Source of the DNA: Parasitella parasitica NRRL 2501
Taxonomy: Eukaryota > Fungi > Mucoromycota
DNA: 64,000 nt
Reading direction: 5' to 3'
Assembly (NCBI GenBank): GCA_025201805.1
Contig: MU619246.1
Span: forward strand, 51,627-115,626
The notes below the pieces were generated by a model. That model saw only the letters and a program-made list of their open reading frames with translations, had not been told where the DNA came from and did no database searches. Below are positions 32,985 through 64,000 of this stretch, one piece after another. Made by a program: the position numbers and the translations under genes. How positions within the stretch are numbered: position 1 is the stretch's first letter; each line of letters begins with the position of its first letter.

Positions 32985-33516
32985 ATGGTAAAGACTAACA
33001 TACGGCACATATCGATGATAGAGAAAGAGAGAATGACACGGATTTGTGGAAAGATGGATTTAGATGAATGTATCAATCTTGGATGGATTGATTGATTGAT
33101 GCGTTGGATACGATTAATTGCCATGCCAACAAACAAAGAAAAATCAACGGAATAAAGCAGGTTGTGCAGGTCGTCTCTTTTTCTCTATCTTTGATCAGTG
33201 CACAGTTTATAAACATGTGTGGCTAATTTACATTGTCATCATACAGCCAAAGCAAATTAAGGATATCAAGGAGTTCCTTGAAATTACCCGTAGAAAGGAT
33301 GCTCAATCTGCTCGTATCAAGAAGAATGCTGACTCTGTCAAGTTCAAGGTCAGATGTTCTCGTTATCTCTACACTCTCGTTGTCAAGGACAAGTCTAAGG
33401 CTGCCAAGCTCAGACAATCCCTCCCTCCTGGTAAGTTGTGTTGGCTCGATATTTGCTGTCGCGTATTAACTCTTTTTTGTGCCTACACAATAGCTCTTGC
33501 TGTCAACGAGATCTAA
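32985..33516 (+). CDS. RPL38: 60S ribosomal protein eL38; introns 32988-33246 and 33431-33493
   Basis: ATG|GT first exon; [42 protein letters not shown]. Confidence 0.96.
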
Positions 33517-52424: not shown

Positions 52425-53986
52425 GTCTAGTATGGAAGATGGATTAATTTTCCTGTCTTTGTTTGATGGATGGATTCATCAATCTTACCAAATGGATATA
52501 CAAAGTAAGTTGCAGCTGGAAGGAAGGAAACCAAGGTTGGTACGCATGGGCGATCCATTAAATTCATTAGGAAACAAGTCGTTGCCTCACGGTCACTTTC
52601 GGCACCTATCCGGTTCGAACGGTAAAAATTATCTTCCAACAGCCAGGCTTATGGAAAACTTTGTTTCTGCTGGAACTACCTCACATCATCCATGAATCTG
52701 CTTTCTACCATTTGGGTCACATATGGTGTTTACAACGTACAAGCTTTGAGCTGATGCACATTGTTCTAAGCAATAATTGGCGATTAAAATTAGAGATTAG
52801 GCGATCTGAATGTATGCTGGCATAAAATTCTGGAAAATGGGACTCCCTTACAAATTAATCCACTATGCTTTGTCTTTTACCATATTGAGTCAGTACACAT
52901 TACTCTAAGCAAGCGCTGCGGTTTGTGGAGGTTTCACAATCTGAACGTATTAAACCAGTGTAATACATATTCAACAGTTTTCATTTCATGTCCTTTTCTC
53001 AGTATCAATTCTTCCAAAGCGTATTTGACGACTAGGAAAAAAGTCATGCTATATAAAAAGTACTTCATCAAGTGCCTGTTCCTTTGAAGGGTTTCGCTTT
53101 ATTAAGATACCAAATTCAGGTTAAATTTCTATCTAAATGAAACTGGGCTATAATTAAAAATGGGATCCAAGACCTGAGAGTATTTGGCTTCCTTTTTACT
53201 GAATAATAAAAGACACTACGTTCTCCGTGATTCAATTCATTATAGTATCTTAATTCATAATTTTACAAATTACTCTCACAATTTAAAAAATATAAACATG
53301 CCACAATATAAAGGGATGAATAAGAATTACGAGCTCATCTATTTACATGTGCACTGGAAAAGTGGGGAGTCTCTCATCTGAACTCTTAAATCCTCACTTT
53401 GATTTACCCACCAACAATGGTTCTGAAGCTTTAGCCACCACTGCTCCCAAACGCCTTGGACAAGATTGAAAAACACAAGCAATCAGTAAAAACCGACTGC
53501 CATCTTTTGACGTCGCCCAGTGGAAATGAAGTAATGTTCAGATACCCCTGGATCATGCCTGTTTCAATGAAGCTTTTTGCTGTGTATCAAAACGTATATG
53601 CATTTTTTATGTAATTTTATATGAAAAAAAGAGACCTTGTCCTCTTTGAGATGTTTAGTATAAAATACAATCGATCAAAACAAATTGAGAGAAAGTCTAG
53701 ATGTGATGATTGTAATCGGACATTACATAATAAGCGGCAAGCGAGCTGTTCATCAAGAATCCTACTATTTTTCCTAGGTTATATAGATACATATAAATGA
53801 ATAAATTTATCGTGAAACTACTGCACTGTATCCTACAGGAATGTTCAAGTGGAAGTAATTCAACCCATATCTGCGACATACTTGATTAATGATCTGTGAC
53901 CGCCCGGGGAGGGGGTACCAAAAACGTAGCTCTTTGGAGCAAACTTTTATTGTTTGCATATTTGCAACTTTCAAACGAAATCATAA

Positions 53987-55742: not shown

Positions 55743-58085
55743 TTATAATGCAGCAACCTTCGTGGTATTAGTATTACACATGTTATCTTCGTCACTTTCT
55801 GGATCATCCATCCATTTGGTATGAGATTGTTGTATTTTCAGGCTGGCAGAGATGTTTTTACGAGGAGGAGGGATAGGAGTTGTGTGGTCAACTGATTCTT
55901 TTTCCAGAGGGATAATACGCGGTAATTGGTTATTTTGTTGATTAGTTGTGCAAAGAGACATATTAGGTGTTTCGCCACGAGCGACGGTATTGGACCTTGC
56001 ACGCCTAGGAGGTGGAATTATATTTCCATTCTGCTCTTGGGTAAAAGCAGATACATTAGGAGCAGAGGTGGTAGCATTATTACAGTTATGAGCAGCAGGT
56101 ACAGGGGGCAAAGGCTCAGATGGTGGAGGAGTAGGAGGCAGCATAGGCCAATTTGCTTTTTTCTCGTTGAAACGGCCATTGGGACTAATAACATTAGAAG
56201 CACTAAGACGACGGTTCACATCGTCCATTATATCTTGATTAGTCGTAGTAGATTCAGCAATACTACTACTCAAAGAGATGGGTCTTGTTTGTTGAGATTG
56301 GACAGAAGAGTAGGAGAAATGCTTAATTTCTGCAACCTTCTCTTCTTCTGCAGATGAATCAAAGCTGTTGGCAGACGAAGAAACACTTTCAGCTGGACTT
56401 TGCAGAGATATGTTTTCATGGGCCATCAAATGATGATATCGGCTGATATCTTGGAGGGCGTTGCCTTCGTCTTCACTTGAATAACGCAATTGCTCTTGCT
56501 CTCCTTCTTCATTGTCGTCAGAGGTATCATACATTGCACTACAGCTTTGAGACATTTGACGATGTCGAGTAGTATTTGCTGCTTGTTGTTGAATCAAAGC
56601 TTCTCTGTTATCGTTATTGCTGCTCAAAAGTTTCAAAAGAAAAGTATCCTTTTCCAAAATGGCCTGGGTGAGTTCCATTACTTGGGTGTCCAAAGACGCC
56701 TTTTGAGATTTCAAATCCAAAACGACCTTGTCTTTTGCTGCGAGCGCTTCAGTCAATAAGATGATTTGGTCACGAAGCGCCTCTGCTTCTTGGTTGTCCG
56801 TGGCATCAGAAGCAGACTGGTAGGCGGTAGGTGCAGCAAGCTTCTCCTGCAGGGCTCTCAATTCAGCTTCATGCTCCAGTTGCTTTTGCTTCAACACGTC
56901 CCTGATTTCAACGTTGATTTTATTCTTATATTTTTCGAAATCGTTCTGAATCTGGACAGAAACTGTCATCATTAGCTTCTTGTGGGCTTGGTTCATCTCC
57001 AGCTCTGCGTTGAGGGCTGTAACTGTGCTTTCCAACTGCTCCTTTTGCTTCTTGAACAAAGCTATTTCTTGGTGCAGGCTCTTCATTTCCGCTTGTGCCT
57101 CTTTTACATAAGTGGATTCATTTGCCAATTGCGCCAAAGTGTCCAAATTAAGTTGATATTCGTCTAATAATCTGTCTTGTTTGACAATGAGTTCGACCAA
57201 TTGACGCACACGAACAGCCTCCTTTTCTTTCTCCTCGATTGCATTCGCAATGCTTTGACGTGAAATTTCGCCTTGTTGTTCCAGTTGACGCTTGTAAAAT
57301 TCAATGTCTTCAGTGGCTTTATTCAAGCGAGCGTTGCTCTGGGCATATTGGGTCTTGAGTGTTTCGCATTGGAACCAAAGGGCAGCAGCCTCATCAGCAC
57401 TGTTCTTTGCAAAAGAAGTGCGGTCGGTCTCGACGGATGTACGGAGAGGGGGCGATGAAAATCCATTTGTGGAAGTCGAGACACTGGAGGATCTGTTGCT
57501 GTCCTGCATGTCGTTCAGATCTAGACTTGACATGGAACCTTTTGAAAAATAGCCCAGTGATTTTGGTTTTTGCAGGTGCTGCTGATCAATGGCCTGTTGA
57601 ATGTCATCAGTCATTGATTTGGTGCCTGAAAACGAACGGGATTTTTCGGTTAGAGATAATGTAGGTTGAATAGAAGAGTTGTTGCTGAAGCTTTTTCTGA
57701 TTCCTGTAGCTTGTATATAGTCAGCGTTAGGAAGAGGCGTTGTATTCACTTTGTTTATGCGTCGAGGGGATGGGGTAGGGTCTGATGATGGGTGTTGTAG
57801 TGGATTTAATGGAGGTGATGTTATATTAAAGTTATGGGGAGTAGGGGCTCTTTTATTTTCGCTACTACTACCTCCTGAATTATCTTGTTGAACAAACTTA
57901 TTCGACCAAACCGAGGATACTGCACCAATCTTTTTCAGACTGGCCAATTCTTTATTAACGACATTGTTTACGGCAGCTTGTGTGGTTGAATGATTCATTG
58001 CGGTTGGTTGCGATGTCGCATTATTAAATTGTGTTGTGCGTTGTTTTAACCACGAGGGTGAGGAGTCCTTCAGTGTGTCAGTCAT
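55743..58085 (-). CDS. Hypothetical coiled-coil protein with proline-rich (SH3-ligand-like) C-terminus, 780 aa
   Basis: Long single ORF; central heptad-rich region; PPTPPPSEPLPPVP, PPPRR and PPPRK motifs. Confidence 0.8.
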   Translation of the reverse strand: MTDTLKDSSPSWLKQRTTQFNNATSQPTAMNHSTTQAAVNNVVNKELASLKKIGAVSSVWSNKFVQQDNSGGSSSENKRAPTPHNFNITSPPLNPLQHPSSDPTPSPRRINKVNTTPLPNADYIQATGIRKSFSNNSSIQPTLSLTEKSRSFSGTKSMTDDIQQAIDQQHLQKPKSLGYFSKGSMSSLDLNDMQDSNRSSSVSTSTNGFSSPPLRTSVETDRTSFAKNSADEAAALWFQCETLKTQYAQSNARLNKATEDIEFYKRQLEQQGEISRQSIANAIEEKEKEAVRVRQLVELIVKQDRLLDEYQLNLDTLAQLANESTYVKEAQAEMKSLHQEIALFKKQKEQLESTVTALNAELEMNQAHKKLMMTVSVQIQNDFEKYKNKINVEIRDVLKQKQLEHEAELRALQEKLAAPTAYQSASDATDNQEAEALRDQIILLTEALAAKDKVVLDLKSQKASLDTQVMELTQAILEKDTFLLKLLSSNNDNREALIQQQAANTTRHRQMSQSCSAMYDTSDDNEEGEQEQLRYSSEDEGNALQDISRYHHLMAHENISLQSPAESVSSSANSFDSSAEEEKVAEIKHFSYSSVQSQQTRPISLSSSIAESTTTNQDIMDDVNRRLSASNVISPNGRFNEKKANWPMLPPTPPPSEPLPPVPAAHNCNNATTSAPNVSAFTQEQNGNIIPPPRRARSNTVARGETPNMSLCTTNQQNNQLPRIIPLEKESVDHTTPIPPPRKNISASLKIQQSHTKWMDDPESDEDNMCNTNTTKVAAL

Positions 58086-60233
58086 TATGTTGTAAGAAAA
58101 ATAAAAAATAAAAAGTTGTTGTCAAAGAGAAAAGAGAGAGAAAGAAATAGCCTTGCTGTAATTCTCAAGAGTTTTATATATAGAATCAATATTGGGTTAT
58201 AATCAGCGGAGAAAGCAGATTCTTTATGATACAAAAATATATTGCTTGGTATTGCGGAGAAGCTAGACATGGCTAAAAGGAAACAAAGCACATGCTTTTC
58301 CAGGAACACACACATCGCACCATAAAGAGACAGAAAGGAAAGGGAATCGATAACGATCCACAGGACAAGTTGACCTTTATGCTAATCACAGCCTAGTTTA
58401 TATGTTATATTTCAACAATGCACGCATTGTAATGAGGTCTATTGTTTGCTTTACAGTAGCCGGCGACTCTTTCTCTTCATATATATATCCGTGCTAATAG
58501 CTAATTTTAGTATAAATTATATGGATAAAGTATTGCCAGCCGAGCTTGGTGCCAGGGCACTTGGTGTAGTACATACGATTCTTTATTATAAAAGTTAGCA
58601 GAACACGAGTACAGAAATAGACATCCCCCGGGCGCACAAATCAAGTATCCAACAATTATGCTCATTTATTTGCATTGTTAAAAGCATACATTGGCACAAT
58701 GGTGCGGCACATAATCATGCCAGCATACTCTACATTTGTAAATCATTTCTATTTCACGAATTGACCCTGTTAATTAATTATATTATGCTAGATTCAGACA
58801 TTCACAGAAAATTTACTTTAATTGAAGGTATGTAAATACTATTCTAGTGATTCTATTAGTTTTTCTATTATTTTTAGAATGTAATGCTATCACCAAAACA
58901 AAGAAGCTAGTAGCGCTGTAAATCGCTCAAAATAGCCGTCGTTTCCCCTATTAATTATATTTCTCGAAGTTTTCTTTTATTCCTCAATGCAGCGTAAAAC
59001 TTGAATTTAATGCATTTCCCTGGCTTATTACTCTTGTGATTAGTTTGCGTAATTAATGAACAATTTCGGACTAGATCCCGACCAAAGCCAGATAGATATA
59101 ACATTAATCGGCGGTACGCGTAGCATAATGAAATCTTCTGTTTAAGAATAAATTTGTGAGCTATTAAGGCTTTTAAAAGCACATTGCGTCTCGGATCTAC
59201 TATATACTGCCATTCCAAGTATATTATCACTGAAACCTTCATTATCACTATGTGTTATAATTGTAATACGTATTTTCGAAACCATTCTGGTCAAAATCAT
59301 TTAATGACAATATTGGACCAAATGGCTGATTGTATGTTACACGATACATAAATCTGCGGAAGTCGCTCGATTTACACAACAATAGAACTTTGTATATAGG
59401 ACTATACAATCAATAAGCCAGAATTAGGTACAAAATTTCTATCGATGTAAGAAGAAATGATTACACTGATAAAAATTGCGCTAAAAAATACATCAATATT
59501 CGTACAGCTCTATAATAGTTTGTTTTTTTGAGGCACAACGGTGTACAAACTCTACCTCGGTAAATATGAATTAAACTGAAATGTAAAAATAATATCTGTC
59601 TATTAAGCTGCTTCAGGATTCAAATGATATTCACTATAGAATCTATTTTTTTTTTACGTACATACAAAATTCATTTATAATGTGTATAGGAATTGAATAG
59701 ATGCACATTTATTTCTTTTTCTTTTTTTTTTTTTCTTTACCAGATGCTGCTGGTTATCATATATTTTACATGGACGTCTCAACTTGATTGAACACTTGAG
59801 TTAGATTTAAAGATGTTGTTGTTTAAAACAAACGTATTTGCATTGTGAAGCGCCTGTTTACACAAAGAATCAGTGCCCCTGGACAAAAATGGAAATTATT
59901 TCTTGACATTTTGATCCGACGCATCATTGTATTTCAAATCTTCAAGGTCAATCTTCCCATTATGATGTACAGGCTAAGGTATCCCATTCGATATGATTTT
60001 GACATGTTCCGTACAGGCACAATAACATTAGTTTCAATGTTTCCATCCAATTTTTCCAAAATTCAGGTAACTAACAACGTAATTTGCGTGGATTCCTTTG
60101 CACTATGGAATAGCAAAACGACATGGTTATCAACAATTTTTTTAAAAAAAAGGGCCAGGTGACATGCAACAAAAATATGTTATTTATACATATATTTTTA
60201 ATATAATTTAATACACAAAAAAGCAGAGCAAAT

Positions 60234-60884
60234 TTAAACCTTGGAAGCCTCGCTGAAGTACTTGGCAAGAGGACCTCTTTGAGGAACAAACTTGACATAA
60301 CATCCATCGGGTCTGAGAGAACCAGCAGCGCGAGCTTCGACATATTCAGCACGAGTAAGAGGAGTGAAACCCCACTTCTTGGAGATGATGATCTTTTGCT
60401 GACCAGGGAACTTATACTTGCAACGTCTCAAGGCTTCAATGACAACAGCCTTGTTAGAATCCTTGGTACGGACAGAGAAAATAATTTGACCAATGTTGAC
60501 ACGAGCAACAAGGCCGTTGGGCTTGCCGAAAGCACCACGCATACCGGTTTGCAATCTATCGGCACCAGCACAAGACAACATTTTGTTGATACGGGTGACA
60601 TGGTAAGGATGGACACGGATACGCATGTGGAAAGAGTCCTTGCCGGAAGTCTTGGACATGTACTTGTTGGCACAGATACGACCAGCTTCAAGAGCTTCAG
60701 CAGACAATTGTTCATATTCGTTGGAAACCAAGTGGACGCAAAGAGGGAAGTCATCAACAGATGCCTTCTTTCGACCTAAATCGTAGATTCTGAGCTTGGC
60801 ATCGGGGACACCACGACAGTATCTAGACTTGGGATAAGGCTTATTCTTACAGTATCTGTAACAGCGAGCAGGACGACGACCCAT
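60234..60884 (-). CDS. RPL10: 60S ribosomal protein uL16 (L10); CDS intronless
   Basis: [46 protein letters not shown]. Confidence 0.98.
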
Positions 60885-60886
60885 TT

Positions 60887-61370
60887 CTGTAAATTTACGT
60901 ACAAAGAGTGAGTGAAAAAAAGTTGTAGAAAAGACATGACGGAATACAGCAGTTGCATTCCTATTTATTCACTCTGCTCCCCCTCCTGTGGACTACGACA
61001 TCTAATTAGTAAGCAATTCAGTGGAAAACACAGGTCACCTTCCCAGAATGACTAAATGTAGTAAAGTTGACCGATATTGTGAATTGCTGAATCAACTGAA
61101 ACTAACCGCAGTTCCTGTTGCTGTGCAATTGCAGGTTATTTACTACAGTCTGGTCATTGTGGGCATTTAGGCATCCTGCTTTATTCCAACTGAACTGTAT
61201 ATGACCACTCCCATATCACATCACCGCTCAGCAACTCTCCATCCATCCATCTATTTATCCATTTATATTCTACATATATATCTCCATCTCTAGGGCTCCA
61301 TCTATCTATCTATCCTCCTCTGTGTGTCTCGTCTGCGTGCGTATATCACAAATCAGCGCTGATGTCTTAC
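60887..61370 (-). promoter_or_regulatory. Predicted 484-nt 5'UTR intron of RPL10 with a structured element and an alternative branch point/3' splice site
   Basis: Donor TTTG|GTAAGA at 61370; acceptor TACAG|AA-ATG at 60887; nested inverted repeats 61014-61200; internal TACTAAT at 61011-61005 followed by three AGs. Confidence 0.7.
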
Positions 61371-61581
61371 CAAATAGTCAAAGTACAGATGATAAAGAAA
61401 GAAATCCACGACATTTCGTTATTGTCACTGTGCTGTTGGGTTCGCTTCCCCTCCCCACCCCCAACCCATACTCTCTTCGCACCACCCAAAAAACCACACC
61501 TTCTTCTATCTCATCCCCCCCCCATTTTCAGCAATGCTATATCGTCATCGTCATACTGTCTAAAAATGCGGTGCAAAAAAT

Positions 61582-62608
61582 TTATTTTTCATCCTTTTTG
61601 GGTCTAACCTGCGTGCGAACGGTCAATTTCAAACCTTGCTTAGCTAAATGTCTGGACAGTAGGCTTGTCTCTATGCGATTATATATGGTTAGCTTTTTTT
61701 TTTTTTCATATGCCAATGTCTGTATTACCTTTCATTCCTGGATACAACTTTGCCGAATACACAGTAAATGGATCCGAGAAAATTTCTTGGATTATCTTGT
61801 TCCTACAAGGACATGTCTATGAGCACTTGTCGCGCCTTGGCGTTAACCGCCCTCAACTAACCTTGCTAAATGCAACAAGCTGAATTGCAATCGGTACTGG
61901 CCCGTCATTCGTATACTCAGATCAGGAAATGCAAAATAATATGCTTTGTCATTGTTTAGATCTTTCAGTAATGAAGGTGAGCTCACAAGTGAGCCAAGTA
62001 AGAATCGAAGAGAGGTTGGTGTAGTCCCTTCGATGATGTCGTATTTTTTTGTCATATCAGTAGACCATAGCGAAGCATGTATGATATAAAAAGGGCATTC
62101 AATTAGGCTACAAGATTCCACAAAAGTCAGTATAAATATGTACAGTTATCTATGACAGCACCTACTCTTGCATGGATTTGTAAGTATCATCTACTACTGC
62201 AAGTCGGACAATAGGTGCAGGATCAATTGGTCGTCTGTCTTTTTCGCCATAGCCTGACATGCGACACTGCTGAGGCTGTTCAACAATATCCAGTCTATAT
62301 GTACTACGATGCAAAAATCAATAACTCTCTACTTTTATATCTCAAGTCATGTTTCTTTACGTCTTATCCTCAATTGAGGTTTACTTTCTATCAGGTTTAG
62401 AATGGCCGTGATCCGACATCATTTTCTTCAAATTTTCATTGTTCATATTGAATAATTCGCTTTGGTGATTTTTAAAAGAGAGCTTTGCCGATAGATCGGT
62501 ATGGGGTTCCAAAAATGTAACTGCAGGTTGTTGAGTTTGTGTGTCTGCAGTGAGCGGCTCGTCGTAGCTGATCAAGTTGGTAAATAGATCATCCCCTTCA
62601 GGTGTCAT
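61582..62608 (-). CDS. Velvet-domain protein, ~5 exons
   Basis: YRLDIVEQPQQCRMSGYGEKDRRPIDPAPIVRL, FAFPDLSIRMTGQYRLQFSL, SDPFTVYSAKLYPGM, LSRHLAKQGLK. Confidence 0.9.
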
Positions 62609-63001
62609 TGTCCAACAAAAAGAAAAAAACAAAGCAAAGGCGAATGTATTGAGAAAAAGCAAAAGCAGTGGAACCATAAAAAAATAAAAAAAAAAAACCT
62701 CATTTATATAAAGTAGTTAGAATTGCATTCGTTTAAAACTAAGACGAATAACACAGGAAATCGCAGATCTACAAGTGATTCAATGATTCGAAAAATGAAA
62801 TCACTTTCCAAAATAAGGGCGCATCATGTATAAACCAGGCTAACTCCGCGTACTCGTTTTGCTTGGAGTATAGTATATGGCTGAAAATAAAGAAATCGTT
62901 TGAATTGCAACTATCATTCAAATTGCTAGAAGGAACCTGTCAATATGTCGGCTTTTTTATTTATTTATCCCGGAAACAGAAAGCATCTAACTAAAATTGA
63001 A

Positions 63002-63435
63002 ATGGATTATAAAAATCAACAGCAACAAGGTGGGTACTACCAAGAAGCCAAGACCCTCCTCCTCCTCCGCCCCAGAATGTCTATTATTATCAACAGCAAC
63101 AAAATCAAGGTAGTTGGAATTATCTGATTCGATTGTGACACTATGTATGGATCGTGCACTCCTTAAAACATGTATACGTAATTAATAAATTATTATCAGC
63201 CTCAATAACCAATGTACAGCAATCAACCACCACAACAGCCAACAGCAGCAACAGCAGCAACAGCAGCAACAACAGCAACAACAGCAGAATTCCAGACGTT
63301 GCATGGGCACCTGTTTGACATGGTAAGGTGTATTGCTGACTGGTTGTGTGTAGTCTGTATTGATGTGATTGATATAGCAACTCTGGTGTGCTTTGCTGCT
63401 GCTTGGCACAAGAGTGCTGCTCTATGCTTGTTTAA
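63002..63435 (+). pseudogene. CYSTM (Gln/Pro-rich, Cys-rich tail-anchored) gene, apparently decayed
   Basis: QQQQGGYYQ..PPPPPPQNVYYYQQ..poly-Q..CMGTCLT..LCCCLAQECC; joining needs two frameshifts and passes an in-frame TAA. Confidence 0.6.
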
Positions 63436-64000
63436 TGACATTGTCACACTGCTGCATGCAAGGAAATGTCCAGCCTTTCAAAAAATAAAACGATGCCATC
63501 ATACTATGATGGTATGATTTTTTTTTCCCGATGCTTTTGTTCAAGTGTTACTTAATTATGGACATTTAATGATAAAATGTAAAGTTGCACAATAACTATA
63601 ATAATCTCCAGTATGTCATCTTCGTTGTCGGCAATCTATTTCCTCGTTTATGACATCGCAAAATATACATTGCATGCCCTGAAAAATTAAGGAGGTTGCC
63701 CGTCATATCACCATCTTTGCACCACGCCCCTCCCCCCTCTTTGAGTTTTACTTTATGCAGTATGAAACAGCGTTCAAAAATACACTAAATATTGAGATTC
63801 AAAAATAACGTTCTTTTGTTTTTGTAACTGCAGGCACTTAGATAACTCTAATAGTCGAACACATTAGACTTCTTGGACATACAGCTAAATAACCTGCAAA
63901 TAATGATTGTCAGCAAAAAATGCATACATGAACAAGGGCTTTGATGATGCATGGGTATAAAGTTTTCTAATTGAAAATGCAAACAAGATGACTCTCTATG

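Follow-up and report, generated by a model that had tools for sequence, protein, structure and literature searches.

One of three RPL10 (uL16) genes of Parasitella parasitica NRRL 2501 carries, directly upstream of its start codon, a long intron with a stable hairpin set around branch-site-like sequences. What does this structure do, and why does it accompany a single copy of the gene? We examined the question in a 64,000-nucleotide stretch of genomic DNA, here called the window. Its RPL10 coding sequence is a single exon encoding 216 amino acids (PF00252; 60884-60234, minus strand), and the protein is 99.1% identical to a Parasitella parasitica protein. The genome (32.8 Mb) holds three RPL10 paralogs, whose proteins are 99-100% identical. 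All three have a GT...AG interval directly 5' of the ATG; the hairpin is present in the window copy only, and the leader introns of the sister paralogs measure 170-260 nt and lack the element. The copies can be distinguished in relatives by whether the upstream neighbor is a Velvet-factor gene, a DEAH helicase, or RPS10. In the window the neighbor is the Velvet-factor gene, which makes this copy the Velvet-linked paralog, and the linkage is kept from Mucor through Cokeromyces and Thamnidium. Both a DNA search and a covariance model find the intron once in this genome, so the element is not a repeat; derivation from a MITE or another repeat is ruled out on the same grounds.

A first-pass annotation of these letters had proposed that the intron harbors an RNA switch controlling the choice among alternative 3' splice sites. 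Every coordinate it gave is correct. The intron is 484 nt long, which is indeed about eight times the local norm, since spliced joints in an RNA-derived run reveal two introns of 58 and 59 nt in the neighboring gene. The features of the locus are the following, from upstream to downstream of the gene.

61600-62320, minus strand: Velvet-factor gene, the upstream neighbor on the same strand, with introns of 58-59 nt.
61371-61403, minus strand: leader exon (exon 1), short and pyrimidine-rich, ending in ...CTATTTG; conserved in orthologs, with a similar form in the paralogs.
61365-61370, minus strand: 5' splice site GTAAGA, donor G at 61370; GGTAAGA is invariant or nearly so in the 11 orthologs whose contig reaches the site.
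61236-61330, minus strand: GGATAGATGGATGG repeat region, outside the fold; the 5' introns of RPL38, RPL9, and the other RPL10 paralogs are filled with this motif too.
61215-61229, minus strand: conserved block A, GAGCGGnGATGnGAT, with a core invariant in the Mucor group.
61183-61202, minus strand: 5' strand of helix P1, from the RNAalifold consensus; two pairs change from G-C to A-U.
61153-61163, minus strand: 5' strand of P2, CCCACAATGAC, which pairs with 61052-61042 in the minimum-energy fold and competes with P5.
61140-61150, minus strand: 5' strand of P3, GACTGTAGTAA, from the consensus; it holds UGUAGUA.
61065-61097, minus strand: P4 hairpin, AGTTGAT (61097-61091) with GTCAACT (61071-61065); 95% of cells are paired, with changes from G-C to G-U.
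61054-61064, minus strand: 3' strand of P3, TTACTACATTT, branch-site-like and followed by TTTAG; invariant in 12 species.
61034-61052, minus strand: P5 hairpin, five pairs between GTCAT (61052-61048) and GTGAC (61038-61034); both halves invariant in 14/14 species.
61008-61028, minus strand: 3' strand of P1, from minimum-energy fold and consensus; its last pairs overlap the TTAC of the branch-site motif.
61005-61012, minus strand: internal branch site TTACTAAT (TACTAAT at 61011-61005), found in 14/14 orthologs as TTACTAAT, TGACTAAT, or TTATTAAT.
60993-60997, minus strand: proximal 3' splice-site-like CGTAG; a YAG lies 7-18 nt past the branch motif in 14/14 orthologs, as CGYAG in 12.
60936-60992, minus strand: purine-rich tract, then ATAAATAGG (60968-60960) and TGCTGTATTCCGTCAT (60951-60936), conserved by ortholog comparison.
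60887-60935, minus strand: pyrimidine tract and distal acceptor TTTACAG, 3 nt before the ATG; a YAG directly precedes the ATG in all orthologs and paralogs.

The splice signals of this intron are split between an internal and a distal site. Downstream of TACTAAT, AGs end at 61002, 60993, and 60986. All three had been put forward as alternative acceptors and are present in the window, but only 60993 is conserved; 61002 and 60986 are not. Across 14 introns this proximal YAG lies 78-115 nt from the start codon, and it sits ~100 nt upstream of the acceptor that adjoins the ATG (AG ending at 60887, ATG at 60884). The internal motif matches the branch motifs of the neighboring gene's intron and of the RPL38 intron, CTAAC and CTAAT, and a canonical intron 3' end thus lies within the intron. 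The branch point of the distal acceptor is, as first described, weak: CTCAC in the window, and weak candidates only in most species. Upstream ATGs occur between the proximal YAG and the start codon in 8/14 species, which argues that the mature leader of so heavily translated an mRNA does not usually include this stretch, and hence that the distal acceptor is the productive one. In the window, one such ATG opens the 60-amino acid, out-of-frame upstream open reading frame (60958..60776) on which the proposed switch depended. The frame is real, but its consequence is not conserved: 6/14 species have no upstream ATG there, including the closest relative, Parasitella. Within the same stretch, between the proximal YAG and the distal acceptor, ATAAATAGG (60960-60968, minus strand) contains AATAAA and stop codons in two frames; judged by its letters, it may serve either as a poly(A) signal within the intron or as a stop, in more than one frame, for upstream ATGs. 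A model with two introns, 61370..60993 followed by a 60-nt intron from GTATTC at 60947, was rejected, as the GT reads AT in loci L021, L023, and L026 and the block is absent from distant species.

RNA that contains the intron exists in two species. In run X1, 100% identical to the window, a 581-nt contig, itself 100% identical, extends from 60776, in the coding sequence, through the whole element to 61356. The run behaves as RNA: the flanks 60000-60191 and 61408-61599 are free of contigs, and the neighboring gene shows spliced joints. A run matching the M. lusitanicus locus L007 yields a 520-nt contig of the same layout. Joints were seen at neither the distal nor the proximal acceptor. These contigs are built from 31-letter words, and with a leader exon of ~30 nt the acceptor joints are beyond their reach; contig depths were left out of the ranking of isoforms. 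Exon 1 is not covered by RNA contigs, as expected at about k-mer length.

Folding reproduces the nested hairpin of the first-pass annotation: P1, P2, P3, and the GTTGA/TCAAC stem are all in the minimum-energy fold of 61000-61210. This fold reaches -65.1 kcal/mol against -46.6 +/- 4.0 in 200 shuffles (z = -4.64; 0/200 as good); the stability of the whole intron is not unusual relative to shuffles (z = -0.36). The 215 nt that end at the branch motif score z = -2.0 to -7.0 in nine introns of the Mucor/Parasitella group, the window included, and -3.5 in Benjaminiella, -1.3 in locus L052, and -1.7 in Cokeromyces; M. mucedo and Thamnidium have no stable fold (z = -0.9 and -0.3). An RNAalifold consensus structure from nine sequences keeps four helices: P1, P3, P4, and P5. 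P2 stands in the fold of the window and is missing from this consensus; it is lineage-specific, confined to part of the Mucor group, and has GTCAT in common with P5. As modeled, the element is a three-way junction with P1 as its closing helix, a stacked P3/P4 arm, and the small hairpin P5.

How widely is this structure kept? The full element is found in Parasitella, five Mucor lineages (the species named are M. lusitanicus, M. circinelloides, M. velutinosus, and M. plumbeus), three metagenome/Logan contigs, Benjaminiella, and Cokeromyces; the last two genera we take to be Mycotyphaceae. M. mucedo and Thamnidium retain a reduced core of P5, branch site, and YAG only. The element is thereby kept in several Mucorales genera, and the branch site and YAG in 14/14 introns. 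Searches with the intron by blastn and nhmmer match Velvet-linked loci only. When the nine closest sequences are used to build a covariance model, it detects the element in L052 (E = 3e-10), Benjaminiella (1e-5), and Cokeromyces (4e-10), with no match in 80 RPL10 loci of other eukaryotes or in the DEAH- or RPS10-linked paralogs. A pattern scan of metagenomes yielded no further homologs, and a protein-seeded scan reached distant eukaryotes only, at <=80% identity and without the element. The P5 motif was also considered as a general regulatory hairpin and rejected, with one further match only in the whole genome.

Conservation is uneven along the element. Pairwise identity in the Mucor group is 80% for the 3' arm of the hairpin, 59% for the 5' arm, and 43-65% for the remaining intron. 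The invariant or near-invariant blocks are GAGCGGnGATGnGA, TTTCAGTTGATTCAGCAAT, GTnAACnTTACTACATTTAGTCAT, GTGACCTGTnTTTT, GAATTGnTTAnTAATT, CGnAG, ATAAATAGG, and TGCTnTATTnCGTCA. The P4 loop (TTCAGCAATTC...) is conserved in the Mucor group; the P5 loop varies in length and sequence across 14 species. Depending on the lineage, the 5' strand of P3 lies 57-141 nt upstream of its partner, and the two are complementary over 9-14 bp in 11/12 species, M. lusitanicus being the weak case. Some 95% of the pair cells hold standard pairs, a share that drops to 25-45% once the partner strand is offset by 1-3 columns. Compensatory changes comprise two P1 pairs (G-C to A-U) and one in P3 (A-U to U-A in L052, TGTAGTATA with TATACTACA); an extension of P3, read by eye, has G-C in L018/L048 versus A-U in L034. 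Significant covariation, however, failed to appear: the three or four compensatory pairs do not stand out from column shuffles (56/500, 40/500). Most helix columns are invariant, so constraint at the sequence level could alone account for much of the pattern. We take the fold to be real because pairing is retained, the thermodynamic z-scores are favorable, and P3 and P5 are kept despite varying spacing, though conserved sequence, and not covariation, makes up much of the signal. On this comparative evidence, the element is a genuine, previously undescribed, and paralog-specific conserved RNA element of Mucoraceae and Mycotyphaceae.

The element matches no known RNA family among those compared. 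A cmscan of 58000-64000 with all 4227 Rfam families (E <= 1, both strands) gave one chance miRNA match elsewhere, and no snoRNA or riboswitch family, TPP included, matches the element at that threshold. The exclusion of a known snoRNA, which the first-pass annotation had called for, holds at the level of boxes as well, neither C/D nor H/ACA boxes being conserved. The would-be C box GTGATGT at 61224 reads GGGATGTGAG in relatives, and the would-be D box CTGA at 61021 reads CCGA or TTGA; the sole conserved ACA, in TTACTACATTT, is paired inside P3, and the topology is a three-way junction rather than that of a box H/ACA RNA. Against the available rRNA fragments, ~390 nt from the 3' end of the LSU plus 284 nt of the SSU, complementarity shows no excess. 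Sense similarity to the LSU 3' end, including H89-H93, which could indicate mimicry of the rRNA site bound by uL16, is not above shuffles in 3/4 species. The assembly contains nuclear rRNA genes as fragments only, on contigs C61, C243, C60, and C92: the LSU 3' end twice and the 284-nt SSU piece, with no 5.8S above the cut-off. The nuclear rDNA array is unassembled or was removed from the assembly.

Intronic RNA structures regulate the splicing of ribosomal protein genes in yeast (PMC4838235, PMC5755908, PMC13630204). The present case has one feature of such autoregulatory introns, a conserved structure in uL16's own pre-mRNA near splice signals. It resembles the intron stem-loop of yeast RPL22B/RPL22A and the introns of RPL30, RPS14B, and RPS9, which likewise have a conserved intronic structure that differs between paralogs and lies near splice signals. 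It differs in that the protein is uL16, the hosts are Mucorales, and the structure is ~200 nt long and built around branch-site-like sequences. Intron structure guides 3' splice-site choice in S. cerevisiae. Introns of this kind, and the yeast introns that use zipper and downstream stems (PMC12350175), likewise combine helices by the branch site with several downstream AGs. In contrast, our element covers the branch site and the sequence upstream of it rather than the interval leading to the acceptor, and the branch-to-acceptor segment here has no excess stability. In fungi, the TPP riboswitch of NMT1, located in the 5'UTR intron, can hide splice signals or make them accessible, and its unproductive isoforms bear upstream open reading frames. 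That riboswitch (mentioned in PMC8216456) is likewise a structured domain in a fungal 5'UTR intron, but the RPL10 element has neither a match to the TPP model nor the signature of a ligand pocket, and its host gene is not metabolic. The intron-encoded snoRNAs of ribosomal protein genes share with it conserved non-coding sequence in the intron of one paralog; the lack of conserved boxes and of an Rfam match, described above, sets the element apart.

Several strands of the element resemble the partners of branch-site recognition. The 3' strand of P3, UACUACAU, is complementary, without mismatch or bulge, to the stretch AAGUGUAGUAUCUG with which this genome's own U2 snRNA binds the branch site, and UGUAGUA in the 5' strand of P3 is identical to 7 letters of that same U2 stretch. 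The 5' strand of P5, TTTAGTCAT, is complementary to the branch motif over 7-8 bp in the TGACTAAT lineages and over 5 bp elsewhere. The flank of the proximal YAG forms a 12-bp helix with upstream conserved sequence in Benjaminiella (-19.3 kcal/mol; 0/200 shuffles as good) and Cokeromyces (-17.2 kcal/mol; 2/200), where shuffles give -10 +/- 2; the sequence engaged, ACGGCATCTGAT, resembles block A GAGCGGnGATGnGAT. No helix masking this flank is significant in the Mucor group. There, pairing of the flank with the 5' splice-site region (TAAGACATC/GATGTCGTA in the window, ACACCTCCA/TGGAGGTGT in M. lusitanicus) was rejected as not above shuffles.

The branch site and YAG are kept in 14/14 introns, which makes an RNA-level role in splice-site choice the most economical reading, and we infer that the element alters splice-site choice or splicing efficiency. 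Our main reading, to which we assign a probability of roughly 0.5, is that the leader intron of the Velvet-linked uL16 paralog contains an undescribed cis-acting splicing-control structure organized around branch-site-like sequences. The 5'UTR intron would form a pre-mRNA structure of ~200 nt in cis. Its conserved 3' arm is largely splice-signal-like, comprising UACUACAU with UUUAG, the hairpin GUCAU...GUGAC, and the branch site UUACUAAU with its YAG; the faster-evolving 5' arm, which includes the U2 branch-recognition letters UGUAGUA, would act as an antisense mask over these signals. The fold would then decide among three outcomes: use of the strong internal branch site with the proximal acceptor, a stall with intron retention, or use of the weak-branch distal acceptor beside the ATG, which would give a short productive leader. 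The splice outcome would set the output of this single paralog. Free uL16 is the obvious candidate for a trans-acting signal, and uL16 feedback a natural hypothesis.

A more specific version, in which the element is a splicing gate that mimics U2 and responds to a trans factor, is rather unlikely in our estimation. Here, UGUAGUA in the 5' strand of P3 would normally neutralize UACUACAU, followed by UUUAG, as a bulge-less, high-affinity decoy for U2. Once released, the UGUAGUA strand would cover the true branch site UUACUAAU, which is complementary to UAGUAA; where the branch motif is TGACTAAT, the P5 strand UUAGUCAU would do likewise. The balance would respond to a trans factor, which may be free uL16, and productive splicing of one uL16 paralog would be set in this way. 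Such a gate, if real, would be a new design for ribosomal-protein feedback and the first for uL16.

Other explanations must be set against the splicing-control reading, chief among them a constitutive splicing aid and a noncoding RNA hosted by the intron. The fold may serve splicing constitutively, compacting an intron eight times longer than usual and presenting TTACTAAT to a distal acceptor at a distance of ~118 nt, while pairing between purine and pyrimidine tracts would hide the AGs in between. That P1 closes exactly at the branch motif fits such an unregulated aid, as do minimum-energy folds of the branch-to-distal-AG segment that reduce the effective distance to <=27 in 10/13 species. 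There is also precedent in the zipper and downstream stems of yeast introns (PMC12350175) and in the dedicated factors of fission yeast for branch-distant acceptors (PMC9508853). Yet the branch-to-AG segments are not stabler than shuffles (z -2.2 to +1.3), and the conserved proximal YAG, which this pairing leaves out, would be encountered before any other AG. The distance between 5' splice site and branch site also stays long, as ~170 nt separate the former from the beginning of the 5' strand of P1. A mere spacer, moreover, needs no high sequence conservation of loops and P5, and two sister paralogs cope with introns of 170-260 nt without the element; we consider this explanation unlikely. Alternatively, the element may be an independent noncoding RNA that acts in trans once splicing has set it free, either an orphan akin to snoRNAs or a stable intronic RNA, for which the RPL10 paralog is only the host. 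A ~100-nt stretch has strong primary-sequence conservation, apparent loops included, the single host paralog is usual for intronic snoRNAs, and introns of fungal ribosomal protein genes do host snoRNAs (PMC8476143). What makes a hosted RNA improbable is that Rfam gives no match at E <= 1 on either strand, that C/D boxes are not conserved and the only conserved ACA is inside P3, that the (partial) comparison with the available rRNA fragments showed no excess similarity or complementarity, and that the conserved core includes signals of the pre-mRNA itself, the branch site and YAG.

The switch as first proposed would work through two competing helices that divert splicing to an upstream AG and impose the upstream open reading frame, under the control of uL16 or a ligand. 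Both helices are present in the window. The one between 61020-61012 and 61088-61080 (AGCAATTCA/TGAATTGCT) beats shuffles there (0/300), does so in Parasitella as well (4/300), reaches a marginal value of 0.04 in M. circinelloides, and is no better than shuffles in the other nine species; it is not kept beyond the window/Parasitella lineage. The other, between the 5' strand of P1 and 60955-60944, can form in the window but is borderline against shuffles (0.055) and at chance level elsewhere; for want of significance, we rejected this association between the 5' arm and a conserved block downstream. The 60-amino acid frame speaks for the two-helix arrangement in the window, whereas neither helix extends outside that lineage, Parasitella and five other species lack the upstream ATG, and no riboswitch matches; this version of a switch is quite improbable. 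The conserved blocks might instead be transcription-factor sites of an intronic enhancer, their complementarity being incidental. The intron does carry an orientation-independent DNA motif, GGATGGAT, common to other ribosomal protein genes, but compensatory and wobble-preserving changes, stems kept across loops of variable length, a stable fold in up to a dozen diverged introns, and conserved blocks that are canonical sense-strand RNA splice signals all render an origin at the DNA level very improbable.

Ribosomal-protein feedback through intronic RNA structures is, to our knowledge, well worked out in budding yeast only, for a handful of proteins. uL16 is the last-loaded protein of the large subunit and a checkpoint of 60S maturation. 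Our literature search on splicing autoregulation of uL16 returned uL1/RPL10a and other proteins only, with no uL16 case of intronic feedback described, and two published screens for structured fungal RNAs mention neither RPL10 nor Mucor. The element adds, among early-diverging fungi, an instance specific to one paralog and retained in several genera. This group includes agents of mucormycosis: Mucor circinelloides, M. lusitanicus, and M. velutinosus, of which M. lusitanicus is genetically tractable. The splicing-control hypothesis would bear on the balancing of duplicated ribosomal protein genes and on the regulatory use of intramolecular mimics of the U2/branch-site duplex.

Additional motifs are shared among the ribosomal protein genes of this genome. 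TGGATGGAT occurs 4 times in the window versus 0.78 expected, with sites at 33080-33088 (plus strand), 52467-52475 (plus strand), and 61241-61249 (minus strand), and is also found in the upstream regions of L003, L035, and L049. Three of the 4 matches fall in first or 5'UTR introns, those of RPL38, RPL9/uL6, and RPL10, in either orientation relative to the gene, and in the other RPL10 paralogs the 5' introns are full of GGATGG repeats. From its distribution, TGGATGGAT is probably a DNA-level regulatory motif of Mucorales ribosomal protein genes. The 13-mer GGAATAAAGCAGG is common to the RPL38 and RPL10 introns (33149-33161 and 61175-61187; 2 versus 0.03 expected). We rejected it as meaningful: its place in the RPL10 hairpin, the inner 5' arm, is poorly conserved, the 13-mer is absent in Parasitella and Mucor, and its sharing with RPL38 is therefore likely due to chance. 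Finally, the 5'UTR intron of the RPS10-linked paralog (L004, G000:C7) contains TGATGA within GTTGATGAATGC, ~185 nt upstream of the ATG, a possible C box of an intronic snoRNA.
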